Part shown: positions 6,848-64,000 of the stretch, piece by piece
How the letters are laid out: every line of letters begins with the position of its first letter
How positions within the stretch are numbered: the stretch's first letter is position 1
NCBI RefSeq assembly: GCF_003704095.1
Contig: NW_020844095.1
Coordinates: 62,001 to 126,000 of the forward strand
Direction of reading: 5' to 3'
DNA from: Pocillopora damicornis
Lineage: Eukaryota
Length of the DNA: 64,000 nt
Translations under genes and position numbers: made by a program
Notes under the pieces: generated by a model
The model's database searches: none
The model's input: only the letters and a program-made list of their open reading frames with translations
Told to the model about the DNA's origin: nothing

Positions 6848-7975
6848 TTATTCCGTGTCCTCTTCAATCGGAGAAAGGCATTTCTCAAAGTTCATTCTAA
6901 ATCCTTTAGGACCCTCAATGGTTTCCACAGATAATATTACTTCCCTAGGTCTGTCCTCCTGCACTGCTTCGAAATATGCTCGGGAGGATGCCCTTTGGAA
7001 GCTTGCTTGAGTTGTCGAGCTATTTACACCATTCTTGTTATCCAAAATAAATGTAACGCCAAATAGTCTACCGATTCGTATCAGCATTCTTCTAACTCCA
7101 GCACGAAATTCCCTTTTGCGAATTGAATAAATAATTGGGTTTGTTAGTGAGCTTACGTAGAAGATACACCGCGTGAATGGTATAATTTCAAGTAAGAATT
7201 TCTTCTTGTTAAGATAAAACAGGGTATTAGTTATCCACTCGGGTAGATAACAGAGTAAAAATACCGTGATAATGATGCATACGTCGACGGCTGCCTTCCG
7301 ATCTAAGATCCTTTGTACCTCAAATTGCTCCTGTTTATGCAGGTCAGAACCCTCGAGGGATCCGAGTTGTGCTGCTGCTACAATGTTGATCTGAAGTATG
7401 TTTGCTGTTTTAAAAACTCTCCAATTTAGGTAAAGGATTATAATAAAAGGGACAACGAACAAAGTTAATGTCAAAGGAAATATAATCTTGTGGGAGCTCA
7501 CTGCTGACTTGCAAAATGGCACTTCTGGATTGTAAAAGAATCCCGAATCGAAGAAGAAAGGAGCTGAGCACAGAAGGGAAGGCAGCGCCCATATAAGCAC
7601 TAATTCCAGAACTCTTGAGGCAGTTATGGAGCCATCGTATGTCAAAGGCGATTTTACAATGGCGATGTATCGTTCATAAGAAACGGCAATGAAATGGAGA
7701 ACCGTACTCAAATAGAAATATCTTGTAACAGCAATATGAAGAATACACATTGTTTCACCATACAACCATCTCTCTTGAGCTACGCTTGCGATGTTGAGCG
7801 AGTTTCCCAGTATCAAAAGGAGACAGTCTGACACAGCAAGGCTAGCGAGAAGAATATACCGCATCCTATGAAAACTGCTTTCCATGAAAATGGTTGTTAT
7901 CACCAATAAATTTCCAGGTAGACCGACAACGTCGATGACAGCATGCAAACCTGTAAGGATTTGCGAGTAAACCAT
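6848..7975 (-). CDS. Intronless rhodopsin-like (class A) GPCR, 375 aa, ligand unknown
   Basis: TM1 GN, TM2 LAVSD, ECL1 W-x-Y-G plus Cys, TM3 ERYIAI, TM4 W, TM6 CYLP and TM7 NPIIY; ATG start and uninterrupted frame. Confidence 0.93.
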   Translation of the reverse strand: MVYSQILTGLHAVIDVVGLPGNLLVITTIFMESSFHRMRYILLASLAVSDCLLLILGNSLNIASVAQERWLYGETMCILHIAVTRYFYLSTVLHFIAVSYERYIAIVKSPLTYDGSITASRVLELVLIWALPSLLCSAPFFFDSGFFYNPEVPFCKSAVSSHKIIFPLTLTLFVVPFIIILYLNWRVFKTANILQINIVAAAQLGSLEGSDLHKQEQFEVQRILDRKAAVDVCIIITVFLLCYLPEWITNTLFYLNKKKFLLEIIPFTRCIFYVSSLTNPIIYSIRKREFRAGVRRMLIRIGRLFGVTFILDNKNGVNSSTTQASFQRASSRAYFEAVQEDRPREVILSVETIEGPKGFRMNFEKCLSPIEEDTE

Positions 7976-22459: not shown

Positions 22460-23371
22460 ATGAAAGAAGTGAAAACTCAGAGAGATTGGCATGACATCGC
22501 CTTTCGCTTATCAGGTATGGTGTTCAAGATGATATGACGATTTATTTACTCGCCTAAGCCGCGCTGTTTACCACGCATCTTAACTGATGCAAGTTTTAAT
22601 TGAGAGAGAATAATTGTTCATACGAGAGTGTCGCGAAGAATAGTAAAATACTCTGACAATTTAATTGCTAAGAATTCGAGAACAAGGCTCGTCTTCGACC
22701 AGATATCTTCCTTCAAAATAAGAGCATTTTTGAAGCAAATGGATCTAAGCTGCAGTCGAGCCAGGGTCTTTTGACGAAGTGACGCCATTTTCACATCTTA
22801 CTGGTTCGTGTCTACATCCGACGAATATCGAAAAGTCGTTGTTAGAGATCATGAAGAGAAATACGGCAGTTTTGAAATACTAGTTTTCAAATAGATTTGT
22901 TTCTGAGATTACTGTTTCATTGGTGGTTACTTTCTCTTAAGCCTTCCGACACGCGTGTTTTTTTCGCTCATCCTTTTGTTCTGAGAAGCTGAAGCTCATT
23001 ATATCCGGTCGTCTTTTTACATTGCAGCTCTTTGTGGAGGATTTGAAAAATACGACATCGTGGAAGATACAGGCTTTAGTGCTAAGAATAGAAGAAAATC
23101 TTCCCAAGAAAGACCAAATGACCAAGACTTAATCAGGAGAGGCTCTCTTCCCCAAGCACGTAAGAAAGGAACTCAGGCTCCACTCCAAGACTCACGCATT
23201 TCCCTCACCAAAAGAAGTTTTAGTGACGGGGTAGTAGTTGTAGAGAAGAACACGGATTTTTCAACAAGAAAAATCGACAGATCGCCCAAATCACATTCAC
23301 TGGACTTAGACGTCTCGTCTTTCGACTTCAGCGAGCTCAGGAGCTCAAGTTTATGCTCTACGGAGTTATAG
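22460..23371 (+). CDS. CSTEL-family gene 1, two coding exons (22460-22514 and 23028-23371), ~132 aa, ending ELRSSSLCSTEL
   Basis: accATG at 22460 reads MKEVKTQRDWHDIAFRLS; phase-1 donor G|GTATGG at 22515 and acceptor ctttttacattgcAG at 23027 join in frame with the 23060 ORF (which the track starts at GTG); shared C-terminal motif. Confidence 0.75.
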
Positions 23372-32469: not shown

Positions 32470-32904
32470 ATGAAATGTGAATTACGCAAAGTTTGGGCAA
32501 TTGTTACTTCAAAGAAGTCAGAAAAACAACCGAGGCCACGCTCTAAGTCCATTTCCTGCTCAAGAGAAGCTTCACATCCAGAAGCCAGTATTCTCTTTCA
32601 TAACAAAGAATTTGAGATTGAAAAACAGACTCACATCCCCTACCGTATCAGGCAAAGGCGACGACGATCTCAGCCTGAAGGAAGAAAAGGCCAAATAGGT
32701 CGTGGCGACCCACGGAATAGCAGCCCTTCTATTAAGAGAGAGATGGACGCCAGTAAAAAACGTCTTTCCACAGACTTTCTGCAAGGCCTTGAGATCGAGG
32801 ACAAACAAGCAATTTGGAATCCACTTAAATTAACGAAAGTCTTCAGTGACACTAGTATTCAAGATGGTTTTTTGACAACCACACTTTGTTCAACAGAGCT
32901 TTGA
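32470..32904 (+). CDS. CSTEL-family gene 2, single coding exon, 144 aa, ending QDGFLTTTLCSTEL
   Basis: ATG with A at -3, proximal TATA box, RPRSKS and RRRSQP motifs, shared C-terminus. Confidence 0.85.
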   Translation: MKCELRKVWAIVTSKKSEKQPRPRSKSISCSREASHPEASILFHNKEFEIEKQTHIPYRIRQRRRRSQPEGRKGQIGRGDPRNSSPSIKREMDASKKRLSTDFLQGLEIEDKQAIWNPLKLTKVFSDTSIQDGFLTTTLCSTEL

Positions 32905-33102
32905 GCTTCACAGGCTTCCAGACCAAACGTCGCCGGTCCATAGGTTTTTAGTCGGTGAAAAATTTAACGCTACTTCATGTGGTGTTCTGCAATTACATGG
33001 TCTGATGTCCTTCTATTTTGAATCTAGCATGAGGGCTCATGGAAACTGAACAAAGAAATCCTTGACAAGACATTTCTTTTCTGGCTTCATTGCTTCAGGC
33101 GA

Positions 33103-33157
33103 TGTACCCACCTACTACGCTTGTGTTCGATTGTACCCACCTACTACGCTTGTGTTC
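33103..33157. repeat. Tandem duplication (period 29) in the probable 3' UTR of gene 2
   Basis: tgtacccacctactacgcttgtgttc starts at both 33103 and 33132. Confidence 0.9.
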
Positions 33158-34484
33158 AACCTTTTTGTTGTATAATACATCGTCTCTCATAATTCCACTG
33201 TGGGCAGCTCTACGAATTTCACATTTTAGCCATCTCTGAAGGACTTCAGCATGAATCAAAGATCAACCGGAGCCGCTGTTGCATTTAAAACACATGTGTA
33301 TATATGTAGAGGTATTCAATACATTTAAGTATGCACTCAGACCACTACCGGATGATGCGAATGATACGAGCTATCATTTATCGGAATAATCATTAGGAAA
33401 CGTTGGGCTTAGATTCTATATTTTCCTGTTATCAATGAAAGCATGGGTCTAATGTGACGCACATAACCGTGTCACTTAGAAAATAGGATTATTAAGTTCG
33501 TAGTTTAACACTATCTACATAAACTTGACCCTAAGGTAAAAAACCTGCGCCAAAGGGAGACAATAAAGCTGATTTCTTTTTGTCCAACAGATAGATATCA
33601 TATCGTTCGTGAACATTTTGGGTTTGTATACACAACTTTAATGAGATACTCCAGATTTGAAACCTATACCTCCCCTCCCCCCAAAAAAACATATATTATT
33701 ACTGCAAAATCAACGATGAAGCATCTACGTTTGTATTTGAAATCGACTTCAATTTTGTATTACACTCCTAAGCGTCTAATTTTGGGACTGAGGCTGAACT
33801 TTCCTATCTTCGGTTTTTTTTTTTTTGTTTTTTTTTTTTTGCATATTGAGCTTAAAAACATTCTTAACATCTTCTTGAAGTTGTGAGGTAGTATTTCATG
33901 ATGAATCACCTAGATTGTGACCAGACTAAGTTCGATTACAAACTGAGTTGTTCTTCGGTGTATCGTGTTAATCAGAATAAGTTGATCACAATTTTAAAAG
34001 TAATTGATTTTGCAGAAGTGGGAAAGTACTGTGGATCGTACTGTAGACGTAGTAAATAAAGTGACTTTTATTCAATTTGCCATTTTGCCATACAAAGCTT
34101 CATTGATATCGTGAACTTAACCCCTACGAGAGTCCTAAATTTATTTTTGAATCGATCTCTTCGAAGAGTGTTGTCATTTAACAGAAAAAAAGTCATCGAT
34201 TGAGTTAGGCTTGGGTCAAACATACAACCCCCCTTCCGGTTGCATCTTGCTAATTTGATGTCTGTTTGCCTTCGCAAACTGTAATCCAATAGTATTTTTC
34301 GCCTGCAAAAAACTCTATGGTCCCAGAAAAGCAGTTTAAAACATCGTGACTTTACTTCTCATAGCATTTGTAAAGTTCATTTGGATGATTGACGTGGTTG
34401 TTGCAGAGGGTGAGAATGTCTGAAAACAGCATTTGGTTCAAAGGCTTTCAGTTTTCTGTGATCTGCCTAAAAGTTTGAGACGGA

Positions 34485-39256: not shown

Positions 39257-39580
39257 TCAAAGCTCCGTTGAACAGAGTGTTGTAGTAGGCAGCTCTTGAA
39301 AGCTTGAAGCATCCAGTTTAGTACTGAAATGTTGGTCGAATGCCTCATCAGTTGAATAGCACTGAAAGCGCCTCACATGTGGAACGGACTTGCTTCTACC
39401 CTGGCGACGTTTTTTTGCGATTTCCGCCATGTCTATGATTTGGGCTTCCACTTCACTAAAACTGTTTTCCATCACTGGGGTCGAATTACCGCTGCAAGAA
39501 GAAGTTTCCCTGGACGCTGAGCTGATATTCAAAGAAATGGATCGACGCCTTGGTATTTTACCATACTTTAACTTCTCCAT
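39257..39580 (-). CDS. CSTEL-family gene 3, single coding exon, 107 aa, ending QELPTTTLCSTEL
   Basis: ATG-initiated ORF with RRRSIS and RSKSVP motifs and the shared C-terminus. Confidence 0.85.
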   Translation of the reverse strand: MEKLKYGKIPRRRSISLNISSASRETSSCSGNSTPVMENSFSEVEAQIIDMAEIAKKRRQGRSKSVPHVRRFQCYSTDEAFDQHFSTKLDASSFQELPTTTLCSTEL

Positions 39581-44825: not shown

Positions 44826-45578
44826 ATGGCCACAGTGAGACAAAAAATGCGTAAGAGAAAAGATGGTCATATTTGTTTGAAAAATATTTCTATGCAACAG
44901 GAGATTGGAGGGTCAGCTGAAAGCATTCCTTGCGCTAACTTCGAGAACCGTCCTTCTGTTGGTCAAAGTGGGGAAGAGCTTCGAAGAACCAGATCGTTCT
45001 CCCTGCCAAGAGTGTTAAAGAAAGAAAACGACACGCAAACCTTACTTCAGATCCTGTTTAGAACAAAAAACCGGCTTAAAAAAAGTAACTCAAATTGCGG
45101 CACTTTGTTTACAAGTAACGAGAACGACAAAATATTTAACCAGGACGACAATTGCACTAAGGTTAGTCAGCCGCCTTCCCAGATTGAAGGCTTAAAATTA
45201 GAGCAAAATAACTTTGTGATTCCTACAATTTGCATTCAACCACCCGAAGAAGTGGACAGAACCTCTCACTTAACGCATCCAATCACAACAGTCGAGCAGG
45301 CGAACACAGCACAACAGCTGGCAAACGATCCAACAAAGGGTTTAATGGAGGATCCTAAACAGGCTTCAGCTATAAGCCGCTCTGAAACAACCACTACAAC
45401 TACAAAGAGAGGAAACAAAACGCCACCGCGAAGGAAAAGAAGCTTCTCGTGGAGCGATATTTATACCATTGGGAATTTGAGAATTAGCCCTACGGAGGTA
45501 TTGAAAGGGAGCAGTTCGTGGAGTGAGCTCCTCAACTCGGCTGCGAGAGAAACCGACCTGTGCTCAACTGATCTGTAG
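44826..45578 (+). CDS. CSTEL-family gene 4, single coding exon, 250 aa, ending RETDLCSTDL
   Basis: Good Kozak context (aaaATGg); long hydrophilic ORF with RTRSFSLP, RKRSFSW and PTICIQPP motifs; shared C-terminus. Confidence 0.88.
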   Translation: MATVRQKMRKRKDGHICLKNISMQQEIGGSAESIPCANFENRPSVGQSGEELRRTRSFSLPRVLKKENDTQTLLQILFRTKNRLKKSNSNCGTLFTSNENDKIFNQDDNCTKVSQPPSQIEGLKLEQNNFVIPTICIQPPEEVDRTSHLTHPITTVEQANTAQQLANDPTKGLMEDPKQASAISRSETTTTTTKRGNKTPPRRKRSFSWSDIYTIGNLRISPTEVLKGSSSWSELLNSAARETDLCSTDL

Positions 45579-50262: not shown

Positions 50263-51258
50263 TCAAAGCTCAGTTGAACACAGATCTGTCTCAATCATAC
50301 CCTGTTCAAATCTAAATCCTTTTAAGGCCATATAGCTTAAGCGTTTTCCATTTGCGCACTCTTCGCCGTTCGAGGAAGAAGTAACATAAATTTGGGGGCA
50401 TAGTTTGGCCGTGTTATTTCCGTTTGTTTCGTTTACATCTTCTGCCATGTAATTATGATTTGGTAACGTTCTAGAAATTGCGTTCTTAGTGCTGCGAATG
50501 CTGTCCACGTTGCCACTAAACGAATTGCTTCTAGTTCGTACCAGTTTTCGTGCACCTGGTTTGCCGCTGTCGTTCCCATTCGCTTGTTTATTAGGTTGCT
50601 TAGCTCCGTGTCTCCAGTTCAACAAACCAGTGAAAGACTTACTTCGTTTGGGACGCCTCGGTCGTTTCGCTTTTATCTTTTTGTCGTCGTGTTCCTCGGT
50701 CTGACTCTCTCCAACTGCAACACGATATGTCGCGGAAGACATTTCACAAGATCTTTCCTCACCCTTTCCGTTCTTGTCGGTTCCAAGGCCATCGACATTA
50801 TTTTCTTTGAGACTTTCCTCACTAAAACCATTTGCGGAGCTTCCTTTCCGCTCGTCAAATTGCTTAAGATTAAGGTCTTGGTTTGGACGTGTGTATTTTG
50901 CTAAATCAGAGCGAGCCTTCCGAGAAAGAACTGGCCGTAGCGCAGCTTTGATAGAGCTTCGGCGCTCTTTACATTCCACGTCTTCGTCCAGATCATTCCT
51001 CGAATGCCGTCTTTGTGTAATTAGTTGCTCAACACTGTTCGATCCTGAGGCTCCATCGTTTTCCAAATTATCCTCGGACAAAGTGTTCTCCGACTGAACG
51101 TCCAAGCTGCTCTTACCTGCTAATTCATCCGTGGAAGAGAACACATCACTATCACTGCCAGATGGAGATCGATTACGCATCCGGAGCCCAAGTTTAGAAA
51201 TCTCTTGGCCGAGTCGACGAACTGCGGATGTCATAACTGTACGGTTGTCTTGTTTCAT
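50263..51258 (-). CDS. CSTEL-family gene 5, ~331 aa from the first ATG, ending GMIETDLCSTEL
   Basis: Open frame of about 1 kb; first in-frame ATG (MKQDN) at 51258 whereas the track uses TTG at 51333; possible upstream acceptor (acttAG, minus strand) near 51335; RNRSPS, KRSKSF, RTRSNSF and PQIYVT motifs. Confidence 0.88.
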   Translation of the reverse strand: MKQDNRTVMTSAVRRLGQEISKLGLRMRNRSPSGSDSDVFSSTDELAGKSSLDVQSENTLSEDNLENDGASGSNSVEQLITQRRHSRNDLDEDVECKERRSSIKAALRPVLSRKARSDLAKYTRPNQDLNLKQFDERKGSSANGFSEESLKENNVDGLGTDKNGKGEERSCEMSSATYRVAVGESQTEEHDDKKIKAKRPRRPKRSKSFTGLLNWRHGAKQPNKQANGNDSGKPGARKLVRTRSNSFSGNVDSIRSTKNAISRTLPNHNYMAEDVNETNGNNTAKLCPQIYVTSSSNGEECANGKRLSYMALKGFRFEQGMIETDLCSTEL

Positions 51259-55151: not shown

Positions 55152-56399
55152 AATTTTAAAAAACCCTGGTTTGTGTATCTTGAAAACCAAAGCAATCCAT
55201 TTCGACCAACGCCATCTTCTCTCGTCAATGTTTCTTTTTGGTATCTTATCGCCTATTTTATTGTTTTTTTAGTTTACCAAACTGACATAATGATTTACCG
55301 TCCATCTCAATATTCTTCATCCTCAGCCATTTTTACTTCTTCTTGGTTTATCTTTCTTGTTCCTCCATCCTTTGTGTTTGTTTACAATCCGTGTCATTCT
55401 CTTTCATCCTTAAGCATAACCGGAAGTTTTTGATTTAATCTTTTTTAACTGGTTTTCTTTTCCATAGCGAGCGATTATTTTCAAGCTTCTTTCTGTTTAA
55501 AGGAATACGTCTTCGAGTGACGAGAAAAGATGCGAGCTTATATTAATGTAACACAAAACTAGCTAGACCATTTTTCAGGGAAATCTGAGGCTGTCCGAGT
55601 GGAAAATTACTTATCAGTCAGGCGGATCTTCGAGTTTTATTTAATTTAAAGTTTTCATTTTCCCTGGAGAAACTGTGTCACATAGCCAAGTCGAAAATTC
55701 CTTCTAAATGATATTTCAAACGTAGGTCTATTGGTTCATCGTCCTCGTTTAAGAAAAAATTGGCATTTCCCACGGGCAGTAAAGGGTTAAGCAACGGGTA
55801 AGCTTTCTTGAAATAACCGACCCATATCAGGATCTATTTTGTCTCCCTTGCTCTACTTAATGACAATTACTGATTTAGTTTTTGAATGATTTGTTTAATA
55901 CAAATGAGCCGAAATAACAGCATCATCAAATAATACTTTTCAATGGAAAGCTCATATTGCCGCGGCTACGTGGTGTGATTTTATTCATGTCTCAGCTCAG
56001 TATCAATCATAACTAGGAAATGAAAAATTGCTTTTGTAGGTGCACAAGCACTTTGACATGATAAAATACAAATGTCACATTTTCCGCTTGTTACAACTGA
56101 ATCTGCACTTGAAAACATCAGGTTCGTGTCCGTGAGAAATCTGTAACCTCTTCTAAAATTTTTTTTAATCCAAGCTTAAACAAGGAGAGAGAGGATTAGG
56201 ATAAAGATTCACTGTTGTTATGAGGAGGTTACCTATACACTTAACCGCATTACAGAGAAAAAAAAATCGTTTTATCCTAAAAGCAAACTTTTAAATACTT
56301 TGTTAATAAAGCTAAAAATAATGCCTGCCCGTGTAGAGGACTCGCAGTGTCAGGTTTAATTAACTCCCCAATATTTCCTTGTCATGCACCACTTCGAGG

Positions 56400-56553
56400 G
56401 TTTATTTGGAACCAACATATAATAACCAGTTCCCAGTTGGCGTGTTAGCTCAGTTGGTAGAGCGTTGCACCGGTATCGTAGGGGTCATGGGTTCAAATCC
56501 CGAACGAGGCCTATTTCCACTATGTTCATAACTGCAAGGATCGCTTCCATATT
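56400..56553 (+). mobile_element. tRNA-derived SINE
   Basis: A-box TAGCTCAGTTGGTAGAGC and B-box GGTTCAAATCC, followed by a SINE body (tgttcataactgcaaggatcgcttccat) also seen at ~37300-37330; no proper acceptor stem. Confidence 0.7.
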
Positions 56554-57618
56554 TTCCATCCCATGCAAATTTAAATCGAAAAAGCCGGAAAACTTAATAT
56601 CAAATTAGTTTTAATCTGTTGTCACTCATTGTCCTTAAAGGCTATTTTTAGGTTACATTTGCGCATTCAACAGGAATCTAGGTTTCTCTTCAGAACACTT
56701 AAACTGAGCGCTATTTTAATGCATGCTTTTTGCGTTACAGTTATTTCCTGATTAATTAAATATTCGATTATCCAATAAAATCATGCAAATAGCAAATATG
56801 CAAACGCCCTTAGGGCATGGTTGGAAGAAAATCAAAAATAATTTTATCCAATCTTTATAAGAAAGTTTAGTTTCTTTTAAAGCTGTCTGCATGTAGTCGC
56901 ACTCAATTCTGTTTTCTTTTCTATGATAATCTAATGAATGGAATGCGACTTTTATTTATTGAGAAGACAAAACACTACACTGCTGTCTTGCTAGTTTCCC
57001 TCGTTAACATAAATAAGCATTCATCAATTAAACATTGTCACACATCCAGATAGAGGAGAGACATTGGCCAAAAATTTCAATATTACTATTCAAATATGCA
57101 AGCATCTCGGAATGCTCTTGTTCAACAAACAAAAGGTATTCTTAAACAGCTTTGAATTACTTTCAAGGCCTACAACGATTTTAATATTTTAAGAAAATAT
57201 TTATTTCTTTTTAAGAAAACATTATCTTTCTACAAGTCACGTCACTTTGCAGATGACACGATCTGTCAGAGATAGGGATTGGTCACATGACTGCCAAAAG
57301 CCACTTAAAAGTGGAACTGTGGTTACTAGCTGATTAAAATCAACATTAACGAGGCGGTGAAAAGGTGCAAAGGACATCATTTCTGGTAATTCATCTACAA
57401 AATCTTATAGTGTCGCCTTTCTGATGTGATGTCGGTTGGAAAAGTTTGGAGAAAGGATTTCATATCGCGGAGTAATTGAGAATCAACAATTATCAAAGTT
57501 TAAGGTGTACATGGTCGACATCACGTCAAGTTGTAGATCACGTACAGACGAAAGGCTAAGGTGAAATATCCCTAAGTAGACCTGTTTAATACCAGCATTT
57601 ATCGAGACCTGTAGAACA

Positions 57619-57978
57619 ATGAGCAGTCCTGTTATTCACCCGGGTGACAAGGTGACCATTACATTGAGTTTAGACGGCCAGGATCTGTCAAACAGTAACG
57701 AACTGGGTAACAAATCAAAACAGGAAGAATCCAACCTTCAGAAACAAATATTCCTCAAGAAAGCCGACACAACGTCCCCAGCAAAACCACCCTTAGTGAC
57801 GCGGAGAACGAGCTCACTACTCAAACTAAACATCGAAGGACTGTTAGTTGTTCCAGAGTTGGAAATAAGACTCAGAAGGAACTCTTATGGTGGTAAGTCT
57901 GTCCACGATGAAAGACACACCGAAGTTGATCCATCGGATGGAATGCTTACCACATCACTGTGTACAACGGAGCTTTGA
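57619..57978 (+). CDS. CSTEL-family gene 6, single coding exon, 119 aa, ending SDGMLTTSLCTTEL
   Basis: acaATG start; RRTSS and RRNSY motifs; shared C-terminus. Confidence 0.85.
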   Translation: MSSPVIHPGDKVTITLSLDGQDLSNSNELGNKSKQEESNLQKQIFLKKADTTSPAKPPLVTRRTSSLLKLNIEGLLVVPELEIRLRRNSYGGKSVHDERHTEVDPSDGMLTTSLCTTEL

Positions 57979-60900
57979 TGGACACTGATAGCGTAATGTA
58001 GCGATTGGATTCCAAAATATGTTGGCGTAAATGTTTTAGCATACTTATTTTGCCTCTGAGCATGACATGTTATGAAAATTTGAAGTAGACAGAATAGCCA
58101 TAAGAGCTTAAAAGAGCATGAAGAAAGAAGATTGCTTCCGTTGTGGAAAGCGGGTTTGATATTAACCATCAGATTCCAGCACCATGGAATGACATGATAC
58201 TTACTCTGAGACTGTTACTCGTCTTAAGCAACTAAGACACTCTCGGTGGTTGAGGGATTCAGTTGAGGCTTTTTTCAGAGTGAAACCTGTGCATTGAACT
58301 GCAAAAATGAAACCCACACAAATGAGCCTTTGCGTGTAATCACGAATGCTCATTACCGTAGTCAGAAAATCGTTTGGAAGCTTGGATAAACATCTGATGT
58401 TCTGTGGGAGTCCCAGTCTTTGTTGATTCCTTACAATATTTCTTACTCGGACAGCAGCGACTTAACGGAAACATTGTAATTATCATTTGAAGCTGAAGGT
58501 CTCAATGGTGTTGTTAACGGTTTTATATGCCCTTCCTTTCAATTCCCACGAGTTTAAGAAACATTTTAAGGAACGGTTCAACGTTACTAAACGCAATACC
58601 ACCAGGAAAGATAAGCTTATTAAGACCGCCGTGAAGCTAGAGCCTGCTGTGTAATATTTCTCGAAAATGACAACAAAATCAGTCACGAAAGACATTTCGC
58701 CCTGAGGGACCCGACTTAATGTGCAAAGAAAACAAAAGATTTCTCATAAAGCTCTTGACCGTAAGAAATAAACAATTCGTTTGCAGCTAGACATGTTAGA
58801 TCATTTTGAGATTTCTGTTTGGCAGAAAGAAATTAAAGTTGTTCAGGTTGAGAAGAACTCTGCATTTCTTTAGAAATAAATGTCCCGGATAACATTTTGT
58901 TAATTACCTATGACGATATGTTTAACCTGTGATAACAAACGGTCTGATAACTCCATTATCCTTAATTATCATGTGAAAGTATATTGACTTTGGCTGGGTT
59001 TCATAACATGTATTTCTTTCGATAAAAAATTGCTTAGTAAAAATTCGCGATAGGATCGGTAAGATAACTAGAAATTGAGAAATACTAGATTCTAATGCAC
59101 TAAACTTCTTAGTGTGGAACAATTTTTTAGTTCATTGCCCAAGGCTCTGAGAGACAGCAAGACGACATTTAGGTAATTATTTATTGATTACGTCACACCA
59201 TCAAGTGGATCCTATTCTTTAAGAATGTTTTGTTGTGTGTAAGTAAACAATACAAGCACTTGTGTCTTTGAAGCAAAGGGTGTTTGTTTTTACTTCTAGG
59301 CGATCCAAATAATACAATGAACCAACAGTTGTTCGCAATAATAAAGCACACCACAAAGTTGTGCCATGTAATTAATATTATTATAAGTTTGGATCTCCGC
59401 CTTTCGTATCAACCATCAGTTGCCGCATCTTTCTAAACGGAACATCAATTAATTATTTTCATATTGCCTTGTCAAGCCTGTCAGCAAATCTTATATTGAG
59501 CAACATCAAATTAGTCATCGTGAATTGAAACTCCGCCTCTCTGTGTCCTTTTTTTTCGTGGTAAGCCCGACTGCTCAAGACTAGTCGAAGACGAGTTTTC
59601 AATCATCAGCAAAGTCAAAGGGAAGGGAATAAGCTGAAGTTCTGTAGCGACGCTGACATAGTTTTCCAAAGACTTCTTCTGGATATCTATGGATTTTTAG
59701 ATCTTCATAAAACTAATTGAGGCTCCTATAGATTACAGTGAGAACAAAAACATTTTCTGCTAACAGTATCTGCTCCAATTCACAGTCAGCAGCTTCTTTT
59801 CTCATGTTCAAGTGTCTCTCATCTCTAGTTAACTTAACAGATTCAAATTATTTATCAACGATACAAAAATGCCTATCAAACAAAATCGGTAGTTATTCTG
59901 AATAGAATTATAATTGCTTATTTTATCCTATCTTTTGATTGTTCGAGATACACGTGACCTTAGTTTCATCCAATTGAAAATTACGCCTTCAGGGCGCGTC
60001 TCCAAGTATTTTTCCGCTCTTTCGCAGTTCAGTTTGTATCTAACCCAGGAAAGATAAAAATTAAAAAGGGGTAACAGAGAACTTTCTGCTTCATCTTCAA
60101 TAACTCAGAAATCACGAAAGAGAGTTTCTGGATTGACTGAACCGCTCAAAACAATGTGAAAACTTAATCTGAGAAATTAATGGTCAAAATTCCCTGGTGA
60201 ACAGCTTGTGCTGCATATATTGGACGTAGTAACGGCGTCGGTTGTTCCAACATCAGATCAATCTTTATCCGGCGGATAGCGCAGTAAATTTGAATAACAC
60301 TTCTCCGCTGGATAGCGCTTTATCTGTTGGATATCGTTATCCGTCCTTGAACTGGGCGCTGATGTCAATAAGAGATAGGGCACATCAAGTGCCGAAGTCT
60401 ATATTTGTAGTCGACAAGAAAGGATATATCACGATGTTTTGAGGGCCCTGTCCCAACGTTTCTTTTATATGTAAATGACAGGATACATTAGAGAGCCCTT
60501 TTTCTGACATTTCCTATGCCTTTAAAAATTCTTGTATCCTGAATTGATTAGCCAGAATCGCGCATTTTCATATTTCTTAATTTACCTTTAAAAAAAGCAA
60601 TTTAATTATAGCTTCACAAGAATACAATAGAGCATTCATTTTAACAAAAAAATGATTAATCATCTGCCACAACTGTTTGTCCTTGTGACAAACCCATTGT
60701 CGCTTGCGCTTTCTAAAACGCTTTTAATTCGCTTTCATGAAACCATTGCACGTTCACAAAAGCACACTATCGAGGTGTTGAAGGACAGAGGAACCGAGAG
60801 ATTGCTGACTGACCAGGCAAATCACTCACAGAGAAGGTTAACTACTGGTAGTAATTCTTGTGAGACAAAAGAGCATTTGACATCAAGGTTAACTTAAATT

Positions 60901-61025
60901 ATAGGAGTAGTCTAAGAAAATTTTCGAAATAAAAGAATTCATTATTAATTGCATAGTTGTTAAGTGGACCTTGTAATTACTCATAACAGCGCAATCGAAT
61001 TCGGTTACACGAGAAGTTGGTAGAA

Positions 61026-61499
61026 ATGTCAAAATCTGTTTGTTATTTCGATAGAAATTTAACAGAATTGAGAAAATCTGACGCCATAAAAATTTGCAAG
61101 AACAACTTCAGTGTGGATAGAAACCCAGCAGAATTGAAAGAACCTGCGGAAACAACGTGTATATTTACAAATGTGGACGAACCAACGGAAAGAAACCGTG
61201 TTTTGGGTCTGAGTGATGGCGTAGGCAAAGAAAATGACCAAATATTGATCGAAAATATATCGGAAAGTGTTACAGAGACCGAAGAAAAGGACGAAAGGAA
61301 GCGTGAAATAAGGAGAAAACGAAGCAGCTCACTGAGTTCTTTAGCACTTCTTAAGCAAACATTACAAGTGATTACAGTTGATGACAAATACGAACAGAAA
61401 CTACGAAGGGTCAGCTCGGTTCCCGGAACATGCAACTCAGGAGAAACTCAACTTGAAGATGGGTTATTGACAACAACGTTTTGTTCCACAGAGTTATAA
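61026..61499 (+). CDS. CSTEL-family gene 7, single coding exon, ~157 aa, ending EDGLLTTTFCSTEL
   Basis: First ATG at 61026 (track starts at TTG 61017); RKRSSS and RRVSSVP motifs; shared C-terminus; AATAAA at 61513 and 61691. Confidence 0.85.
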   Translation: MSKSVCYFDRNLTELRKSDAIKICKNNFSVDRNPAELKEPAETTCIFTNVDEPTERNRVLGLSDGVGKENDQILIENISESVTETEEKDERKREIRRKRSSSLSSLALLKQTLQVITVDDKYEQKLRRVSSVPGTCNSGETQLEDGLLTTTFCSTEL

Positions 61500-64000
61500 T
61501 CAGATCATGTATAATAAAAACGCTATGATCAAAATATAGGCTGGTTATCATGGTCTCGAGGTAAATAATAATTAGATCTATCTTTGGCTTGCGCATGAGT
61601 GCACGCGATGAGTCGGCTTCGAACAAGGTCAAATCATTTAGAAAAGAGATTAAATCTTGAGAAGAGATTGGTTCATGTGCCCTGTAATTGAATAAAGAAC
61701 TACTTAGTAGAAAATACTATGCTACGATATCCTTAAAATGAATGCAGCCTTATATTCTTTACTTCGCATGTACTGAAATGACTAATTATGCAGAAAGTAA
61801 ATAGAATTTTCAATGGTGACCCTAAATTGTGAGGTTAAAATAAATTCCTTTATCATCATACCCACAATATGATGATAAACATATATTTTATAACAATACA
61901 TAAAATTTATTCATGACTGAAGTAAACGCAGTCAAACGTTTGCATTCATTAAAAGACAAGCTAAACCTCTGTATAGCATGGAAAGCTATCAAAATTGTTT
62001 TCAACTAGTCATAGAAGTCAAATTGCAGTTGAGCCTATTACAATCCTGTAAGAGATTCATTCGCGCAGCTTGCAGTTATGTTAGCTTGCGATTATGTCTG
62101 TTGCAGATATTGAAGGAAAGTTATGTAAATGTAAATGCCTTCAGTCATGCCAAGTTACCTGCTATTTGTGAAAGACATTAATTCATTGTTCATTTACTAG
62201 TTTATCATTTGAATTTCTAGCAGACTTGACTTTCTCTGCATGTTTATGACGGAAAGAGGTTTACTTTAATTAGCAAGCAGGTCCACTGGAGATTATTTAG
62301 ACAAGCCAAATGTTTTTTTTGGCTGCCAAACACAACACGGAGAACTTACACACATCAATATCACGTGGCTTGTCGCCGAATGTCACACTAAAAACTTCAA
62401 TTCCAAGTTGTAAGATTGGCCACGAGGTTGGCACCTATTCTTTGAAATTTCAAACATTGCATCATCTTCATTTTTTTTAGGGTGTTCCAGTTCAGAAAAA
62501 CAGTTAAAAACAACTGTAGATGCCTCGATTGTTCGAAAGCGGTAAATGAACAATTGAGAAAGCTCAAGGGAGTTCACTAAACAACCGCATTTTTCTCTTT
62601 ACGAGCTACAAAATGTTCGTTCGCGCCTACGAGACGTGTGAAGCGTTAAATTGCCTCATCAACATTGATTCTATCTCTGTTTTGGTAAAATTTCCGCACA
62701 GCCCCATACTATTGTAAAACAAATCTGTTTTCCCAATGGCAATGTATTGTTTTAGTCATTGTTTTCTCTATTCAAGAACTGAATGTATAATGAAGTATGG
62801 GGCTGTGCGGAAATTTTACCTCTGTTTTTGTTTCGAACTTTCCCTAAATATGACATGACTCGACTGCAGAAAAGCTCATCCCAAAGTTGGTCAGTGGTTC
62901 ACTTTAAGGTTAGAAGTCTACTCCATGAAACATTCAGCGCACGGAATATGATATCCACAATAAAGCATCTATGACATTGCATTCCTACTAACAACTATTC
63001 ACTGAAGTGGAGGTGGTTACTGGTGGATAATAAAATCTACCTCTAGACACCGACACTGAGGGAGCAAATAAAAAAAGACGGTTTTAAATACAGTATTTTC
63101 GGGTACAAGTCCTGCACGAGTTCCTCGAAAGTCAATAGCAAAGGATATTCAGAGTTTGTGGTCAATCAGAGCGCGCCTTCAACATTATCCACTGTCTTAG
63201 TATGTACTATACTGACTATGAACATTAACCTTACCATATAAACTTATTATGGGCTATCCATTTGAAAACGATGGTAAAACAAAATTACAATATTTCAGTT
63301 TAACTGCAACCAGCACACTTGCGATGATCATTGCTTCACTTCATTTCCATACAGAGGTCCAATAAAATTTATTCCATTTAAATTGTGAGAAATCTTGGAA
63401 AATTTCTGATTCCAAGAGAGACAACTGTCTCTGTGCCACAGAACTCTGACTTTCAAATTGCAGATCACATTAGAGTTGAACATTTTCCCATGCCAACCCT
63501 CAGGAAACTGCGGGTAACTTTTGTTAAAACATGTAATTTTACGATGAAATGGTTTAAACAATACCAAACGAGATCACTTTAAACCTTTCCTTATGCTTGC
63601 CATCAGCTAATTCTCTATTTACATTAACTTTTCGCCACTATCTCGAGTCAATTTCTTTAGCCCTACGGTACAGAACTTTCTTCAACTTAATAAGCGATAC
63701 TAATAATTATCAGTTCGATGAAACAAAAAGAAAATTACAAGAGGTGATAATAAACCAGAGGCAAAATGATAGCTAAGGGTGAAGGAAGTTCAAAAGATGA
63801 CACTTGACACTGAAATCGAGGCTGACATTTTGGAAGAAGCAAAAACAATGGAGACAACACAAAAGACAAAACCAACACACTGATTTTCGAATGGCACGTG
63901 ACAGTACACGTGAGCGGTGAGCGGTGAGCGTTGGACGGATTACAACTCTTCGCGACAGCGATTCTTGCACGGAAACTACATTGGAAGTATTTGTCAAACT

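Follow-up and report, generated by a model that had tools for sequence, protein, structure and literature searches.

The described systems that come closest to the sequence element reported here are peptides recognized at a free C-terminus. Class 1 PDZ ligands follow the pattern X[T/S]X-phi-COOH, with a maximum of 7 C-terminal residues being read by a PDZ domain (PMC2553845); in cadherin-23, for instance, the consensus PDZ-binding end is -ITEL (PMC2928128). Longer PDZ ligands exist as well: PDZ2 of ZO-1 requires the last 12 residues of Cx43 (PMC3121883). A second system is the mode III site of 14-3-3 proteins, p[S/T]-X1-2-COOH, for which upstream arginines are preferred (RRXp[S/T]; PMC12421828). 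The third is the prenylation box; pentapeptide 'CaaaX' ends can be farnesylated as well, their last three residues being read as in CaaX (PMC11121372).

The window analysed here, by which we mean the whole stretch of 64,000 nucleotides (C730:62001-126000), holds a cluster of ORFs with open frames of 119-363 codons, and in a six-frame scan 7/7 of them end in [LF]C[ST]T[ED]L-stop (stops at 23371+, 32904+, 39257-, 45578+, 50263-, 57978+ and 61499+). We refer to the end of these ORFs by the shorthand …DGLLTTTLCSTEL-stop, a 13-residue C-terminal peptide, and number its residues backwards from the final Leu (position 0). This tail resembles class I PDZ motifs in its free C-terminus and in its Thr at -2 and Leu at 0; it may also resemble them in its context, since it stands at the end of a region predicted to be disordered and perhaps accessible, and the nearby phospho-acceptor sites could gate binding. 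It differs from them in the length of the conserved stretch (13-18 residues versus the usual 4-7), in that odd and even positions are equally fixed, with an invariant Cys at -4, and in that it defines a whole family of paralogs, whereas PDZ motifs decorate proteins that are otherwise recognizable. As in 14-3-3 mode III sites, a Ser/Thr stands two residues from the free end, and, as is the case for two-site 14-3-3 clients, the short tail proteins have additional basophilic sites upstream; unlike mode III sites, the tail has no arginines beside the terminal Thr and its conserved flank is much longer. The likeness to CaaX/CaaaX boxes lies in an invariant Cys at a fixed distance from the free C-terminus, and the difference in its position, -4, and in the residues that follow it, S-T-E-L, which are polar or acidic where aliphatic ones are required.

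The genome searched is a 234 Mb eukaryotic assembly of 4,393 contigs and belongs to a hexacoral. Past the window edge, a degenerate DNA pattern applied to the whole genome added three copies to the cluster (L010 on the minus strand, L011 and L012 on the plus strand), which on this contig thus amounts to ten tail genes in 53.5 kb. Genome-wide there are 12 members: the ten of the cluster and two dispersed ones, on contigs C192 (end ...DGVLTTNFCSTEL) and C2193 (end ...VTDLCTTEL). Without a stop, the hexapeptide pattern occurs at chance level across the 234 Mb (138 occurrences versus 149 in a reversed control). With TRR following, it occurs 18 times versus 6 in the reversed control, and the family accounts for 12/18, so that the excess of the stop-linked motif over the control corresponds to the 12 family members. 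The remaining matches (on C770, C1708, C1935, C2721, C3577 and C4129) were taken as chance, since their frames are only 8-50 codons long and their tally agrees with the 6 control hits.

A search with a tail profile found a decayed eleventh copy of the cluster outside the window, at C730:141475-141543 (L036:1441-1575). It ends in ...DGLFTATLCSTKL-stop after a 44-codon frame, has repeat-like translated sequence directly upstream and carries two replacements, T-7 to A and E-1 to K, both at positions that are otherwise near-invariant. We read this copy as a pseudogene, and it serves as a natural control for relaxed constraint.

Table 1. Tail genes of the window (window coordinates)
Feature	Position	Strand	Product and end
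g1 exon 1	22460..22514	+	MKEVKTQRDWHDIAFRLS plus first base of a split codon, then GT donor; six-frame match to the N-terminus of P0038
g1 intron	22515-23027	+	GT..AG
g1 exon 2	23028..23371	+	end ...SELRSSSLCSTEL-TAG
g2 CDS	32470..32904	+	144 aa, single exon, end ...IQDGFLTTTLCSTEL-TGA
g2 tail, 13 conserved codons plus stop	32863..32904	+	DGFLTTTLCSTEL*
g3 CDS	39257..39580	-	107 aa, end ...QELPTTTLCSTEL-TGA
g4 CDS	44826..45578	+	250 aa, end ...RETDLCSTDL-TAG ('TD' tail variant)
g5 CDS	50263..51258	-	331 aa from first ATG, end ...IETDLCSTEL-TGA
g6 CDS	57619..57978	+	119 aa, end ...SDGMLTTSLCTTEL-TGA
g7 CDS	61026..61499	+	157 aa, end ...EDGLLTTTFCSTEL-TAA

The spliced product of g1 has 132 aa, which equals the length of P0038. 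Two further features of the window were recorded. Upstream of the cluster, positions 6848-7975 of the minus strand hold an intronless 375-aa ORF with the look of a rhodopsin-class GPCR. About 200 nt 3' of the g2 stop, at 33100-33158, a unit of ~29 bp (gta ccc acc tac tac gct tgt gtt c...) is present as two tandem copies.

According to the original prediction, made from the seven window genes, the tail is conserved as protein and not as DNA. The codons quoted for these genes are all present in the sequence, and the statements built on them extend to the 12 copies. Third positions were said to vary freely, and the mean pairwise identity over the last six codons is indeed 0.79, 1.00 and 0.32 at codon positions 1, 2 and 3, respectively. 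All three stop codons recur (TGA six times, TAG and TAA three times each). The sequence after the stop was described as not aligning; over the 39 nt past the stop identity is 0.276, which is background (0.258 for unaligned upstream coding sequence). Similarity running beyond the stop, which the prediction had named as the sign of a repeat, was looked for by blastn with 500 nt on either side of the 12 stops, and only the last ~45 nt of coding sequence match, the matches ending no more than 4 nt from the stop. Pooled Nei-Gojobori estimates for the last six codons are pS 0.90 and pN 0.085, and for the gap-free codons that precede them pN/pS is 0.97.

Gene conversion is excluded because it would homogenize synonymous sites. 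More generally, the codon pattern and the absence of similarity past the stop, together with the single copy of the g6 locus in the genome, rule out that the conservation stems from a DNA repeat, from gene conversion or from an RNA element. The stop comes right after the final Leu in 12/12 genomic copies, in every ortholog for which DNA was at hand and in 57/57 unique proteins, as expected from the proposal of selection on a free C-terminus. The tail is under very strong purifying selection at the protein level, and its free C-terminus is fixed. The one point on which the prediction has to be amended is length: the conserved end that it described stands, and the conserved peptide comprises 13 and arguably 17-18 residues, not six.

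Orthologs lead to the same picture. In a 20-kb locus of another species (L022), g6, g8 and g7 all have syntenic orthologs, and a further g8 ortholog was found at L023. For ortholog pairs dS ranges from 1.4 to >2.6, i.e. it is saturated, and dN/dS, the measure put forward with the original prediction, is 0.15-0.36; over the 13 tail codons the pairs show 6-14 synonymous versus 0-2 non-synonymous differences. Between g6 and its L022 ortholog, for example, dN/dS is 0.15 and the tails differ at 10 synonymous and no non-synonymous sites. For g2 the comparison could be made at two distances. The close ortholog (P0008/L039) has pS 0.24 and pN 0.12, with 2 synonymous and no non-synonymous differences in the tail, and a 3'UTR that is alignable at 78%, a level to be expected of orthologous DNA so little diverged. 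In the distant ortholog (P0041/L040; pS 0.74) the tail shows 7 synonymous and 2 non-synonymous differences and the 3'UTR is unalignable.

The way in which the family was searched determined what was found: a word-indexed search with the g8 tail returned g8 orthologs only, and it was an unindexed profile search that opened up the family. An HMM built from the 12 tails gave 42 matches at E<=1e-3 among 1.84 billion protein representatives, nearly all of them proteins of 106-293 aa matching at their extreme C-terminus, and a search with a profile of the full family added 57 more relatives. All named relatives are called 'hypothetical' or 'uncharacterized'. They include three members in Desmophyllum pertusum, all on one 4-Mb contig (OS493_008486, 008491 and 008492), one in Oculina patagonica (LOC144638042) and one in Nematostella vectensis (A7RSY2 / XP_001637419). 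As known so far, on a taxonomic range based on four named species, the family appears to come from hexacorals only (stony corals and sea anemones). The libraries searched hold no Pfam entry, named relative or paper for the family or the motif, and a full-text literature search with LCSTEL, TLCSTEL and STEL-COOH returned no relevant paper, the matches to CSTEL being unrelated words. In P0122, P0106, P0026 and P0076 the protein seems to extend past ...TEL; these extensions were rejected as artefacts, since they start with Trp, i.e. with a TGA misread as sense by a metagenome gene caller. Such artefacts could mislead length-based searches.

In Nematostella, scaffold DS469536.1:177990-198466 (L038) holds five tail-bearing ORFs within 20 kb, so that the tandem cluster must be older than the divergence of sea anemones from stony corals. 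This divergence dates back on the order of half a billion years. An ortholog of g5 within the Nematostella cluster is likely from the sequences compared. Only one of the five Nematostella ORFs is listed as a called gene; the other four may be unannotated in that version of the assembly.

The tail logo derived from 57 unique sequences, which come from several hexacoral species, reads [ED]T-x-[LI]-x-[DN]-G-h-h-T-T-x-[LF]-C-[ST]-T-[ED]-L-COOH. C(-4), T(-2) and L(0) are each found in 57/57 sequences, as are the alternatives L/F at -5 and S/T at -3, while T(-7) occurs in 56/57 and E(-1) in 55/57; farther out come T(-8) and G(-11) (50/57 each), D/N(-12) (48/57) and T(-16) (36/57). R-R-x-S-type sites at about -62 and -33 from the end recur in many members. 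Outside the conserved islands alignment is poor, with a mean column identity of 15%. Polar residues make up 60-72% of the proteins, and a TM-like or signal-like segment occurs in no member. The products are small (about 105-330 aa) and fast-evolving, probably soluble and by prediction largely disordered, and from the absence of signal and TM features we infer a probable cytosolic location.

When g6 was modelled by AF2 with the family alignment, mean pLDDT was 62 and pTM 0.22, confidence (77-88) being limited to the last ~19 residues (101-119). In this part the model predicts a short beta-hairpin that turns at D-G and continues into an extended ...LCTTEL end; for the hairpin there is thus a single AF2 model, modest in its overall confidence, and for our structural statements as a whole there are two such AF2 models. 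Domain and structure resources yielded little for the small proteins: Pfam gave no match at E below 0.06 for 11 small members, precomputed Pfam annotation is empty for 57/57 of the relatives listed with the family profile, and the ESM Atlas contains no usable neighbour for g6.

Several candidate signals were considered and rejected. A weak LIM match (E 0.15) where the C192 frame begins has no counterpart in the orthologs P0035 and P0036. For a caspase-type site between D and G at -12/-11, P4 is not conserved and N replaces D in 7/57 sequences. ER retrieval of the KDEL type, as defined in PROSITE, involves a signal peptide and an end of the form [KRHQSA]-[DENQ]-E-L; the end S/T-T-E-L has Thr where D/E/N/Q is expected, and no member has a hydrophobic N-terminus. 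The LC8 motif is 'TQT'-like and contains Gln, which the tail lacks. As a separate observation, the g6 subfamily shares a conserved string, 'EGLL[VI]VPE' (window 57830-57900 and orthologs), which is LxVP-like and stands 8 residues before 'RLRRxSYGG'. An LxVP-like string ahead of an RRxS site recalls calcineurin substrates of the RII-peptide type, which we mention as an idea only.

One member departs from the small disordered type. The N-terminal ~140 residues of the C2193 protein are predicted to adopt an EVH1/RanBD-type fold. Its Pfam score for WH1 (PF00568) is 21.3 bits, just under the cut-off of 22.4, and the same domain is precomputed for five of its orthologs; the UniRef name of the Desmophyllum ortholog is 'WH1 domain-containing protein'. 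In Foldseek, models of this type (P0040 and relatives) match the EVH1 domains of N-WASP and ENAH as well as Ran-binding domains (E 2e-5 to 1e-4, TM(target) up to 0.73), the N-terminal pLDDT of the model being only 65-87. A sequence search of the PDB with P0040 returned noise only. The predicted domain thus resembles in fold that of EVH1/WH1 proteins (Ena/VASP, N-WASP, Homer and Dcp1, with the RanBD fold). Known EVH1 architectures carry an EVH2, VCA, coiled coil or SPR segment after the domain; C2193 has none of these, and a disordered region follows instead, with the end ...TDLCTTEL. C2193 orthologs down to 40% identity all end in ...TDLCTTEL, and the TD variant is found in g4 and g5 as well. 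Since the tail also ends a protein with a predicted EVH1 fold, it behaves as a portable module.

RNA was examined over g6 and g7. Of the words sampled from window 56000-62000, 38-49% occur in RNA-seq runs (eight on record as polyA, the rest guessed to be RNA). In the four runs from four studies that were assembled over 56200-62199, two of them recorded as polyA RNA-seq and two of guessed RNA status, g6 is covered by one unspliced contig per run. Assembled contigs of this kind demonstrate presence and continuity of the RNA, not its ends or levels: the g6 contigs start at 56642-57285 and end at 58859-59326 depending on the run, and the longest imply a 3'UTR of ~1.3 kb. RNA contigs over g7 span 60994-61820 and are likewise unspliced. 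Among the g7 variants listed in them, 9/11 in codons 1-86 are replacements, and in the C-terminal third two are listed, both of them synonymous. The tail genes are real protein-coding genes, mostly intronless and, judged from g6 and g7, expressed.

Some transcript features of this region were noted apart from these. A second contig, present in 4/4 RNA runs, matches only 252 nt of the inner coding sequence of g6 (57621-57872; >=95% identity) and has unrelated sequence on both sides. No second genome copy was found for it, and none of the loci retrieved contains the 30-mers that flank the match; an unassembled paralog, a chimera among the contigs or trans-splicing could account for it. Within g6, at about 57886-57895, a donor-like GT-AAG site follows '...RRNSYGG'. 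P0011, a predicted 453-aa protein of a relative, joins the N-terminus of g6 to g7-like and g9-like sequence and has the g9 tail at its end, and may reflect either read-through splicing between genes of the cluster or an artefact of the gene model. Roughly 1 kb upstream of g6, at 56400-56599, many short RNA contigs with odd joints pile up at a very high word depth of 400-1,450. This pile-up could stem from a repeat, or else from an abundant small RNA common to other loci.

What could such a tail do? We consider the best explanation as a whole to be an expressed hexacoral family in which the tail acts as a docking peptide, with a PDZ domain as the leading candidate for its reader, and give this combination about an even chance of being correct. 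The PDZ domain leads because T(-2) together with L(0) makes a canonical class I ligand; these residues are present at the extreme C-terminus in every unique sequence. The tail would be read at its free carboxylate, a PDZ domain would recognize the class I pattern, and the upstream hairpin and the invariant Cys(-4) would add further, partner-specific contacts. The R-R-x-S sites, which suggest control by a basophilic kinase or by 14-3-3, would make docking regulable, and the paralogs could then be interchangeable, fast-diversifying adaptors or competitors that plug into one common partner. The genome has at least 75 PDZ exon matches, and no PDZ gene linked to the tail cluster was found. Against a PDZ domain, E(-1), S/T(-3), L/F(-5) and T(-7) are fixed like the even positions, so that both faces of the predicted strand are conserved, and we know of no standard PDZ explanation for Cys(-4). 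Moreover, the assignment draws on a pattern of three residues that is common among unrelated C-termini. Judged from these sequence features, a PDZ domain as the reader has a chance that comes close to even, or at best reaches it.

The length of 13-18 residues, the fact that both strand faces are conserved and the invariant Cys, all of which exceed what a PDZ domain needs, would be accommodated by another kind of reader: a cullin-type ligase might recognize the tail as a C-terminal degron, or the tail might be bound by a lineage-specific reader or enzyme that takes up the whole hairpin-plus-tail module. Such a reader would suit a family seemingly restricted to one lineage, and disordered proteins that evolve fast, are tandemly amplified and keep a fixed end resemble regulated short-lived factors. 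This explanation is reached by exclusion, no specific reader being indicated, and to our knowledge no C-degron class resembles the tail sequence; we regard it as unlikely. The same holds for a more specific form, in which the tail would be no ordinary PDZ ligand but the handle of a dedicated recognition or modification system, known so far from hexacorals only, Cys(-4) would be used chemically (acylated, oxidized or covalently captured), and disordered kinase-regulated proteins from an old cluster that keeps duplicating would compete with the EVH1 protein for the same reader; we rate this scenario as doubtful, to a similar degree.

A reading as a phospho-dependent 14-3-3 mode III site (pT-E-L-COOH), clamped to a 14-3-3 dimer together with the R-R-x-S sites, appears improbable. 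The core T(-2)-E-L-COOH fits mode III, and many members have R-R-x-S or R-x-x-S-[FY]-x-G at about -62 and -33, like 14-3-3 or AGC-kinase sites. Yet the preferred upstream Arg is absent, residues -5 to -3 being [LF]-C-[ST] in 57/57 sequences, and no kinase consensus is evident around T(-2). In addition, mode III needs only ~3-5 residues, which leaves the 13-18 conserved ones and the invariant Cys unexplained.

Lipidation of Cys(-4), by S-acylation or by prenylation through an extended C-x-x-x-X box, would turn the tail into a membrane anchor signal. The Cys is present in 57/57 sequences, always after L/F, and enzymes of the CaaX type need a free, exactly positioned C-terminus. A canonical CaaX box was rejected, since its Cys lies at -3, whereas the tail Cys lies at -4 and is followed by polar or acidic residues; the geometry agrees with the extended CaaaX form only, and there too the intervening residues are S/T, T and E/D and not aliphatic. 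Prenyltransferases prefer an aliphatic residue in the middle positions of CaaX, and the tripeptide rule places Glu in that position. The polar flanks (T-T-T, S-T-E) are unlike known acylation or prenylation contexts, and conservation out to -12 or -17 would go unexplained, which makes a lipid anchor as improbable as the 14-3-3 site.

That the tails come from a DNA repeat, as the seven to eleven copies in ~55 kb might suggest at first sight, or from a transposon, that they represent a conserved RNA element, or that the ORFs are there by chance, can practically be dismissed, given invariant second and random third codon positions, three stop codons, no likeness past the stop, single-copy loci with syntenic orthologs elsewhere at a dN/dS well below 1, transcription of the genes, and a motif at chance level genome-wide unless a stop follows.

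Taken together, random third positions, the use of three stop codons and a fixed stop position are a reliable signature of a functional C-terminal motif. Families that are defined by a short terminal peptide alone are missed by domain databases and often by gene callers. What is new here is a family defined by its tail, which is unusual in the length and depth of conservation of this tail, in its invariant Cys, in the age of its cluster and in the reuse of the tail on an EVH1 protein; the family now has a definition at the sequence level, and both it and its tandem cluster are common to stony corals and one sea anemone. The functional question thereby comes down to the binding partner of an 18-residue peptide whose end is free. 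Should this reader be a PDZ scaffold, the tail proteins would be lineage-specific adaptors or competitors under kinase control, acting in cnidarian cell signalling; if it is something else, the tail would represent a new kind of C-terminal recognition signal.
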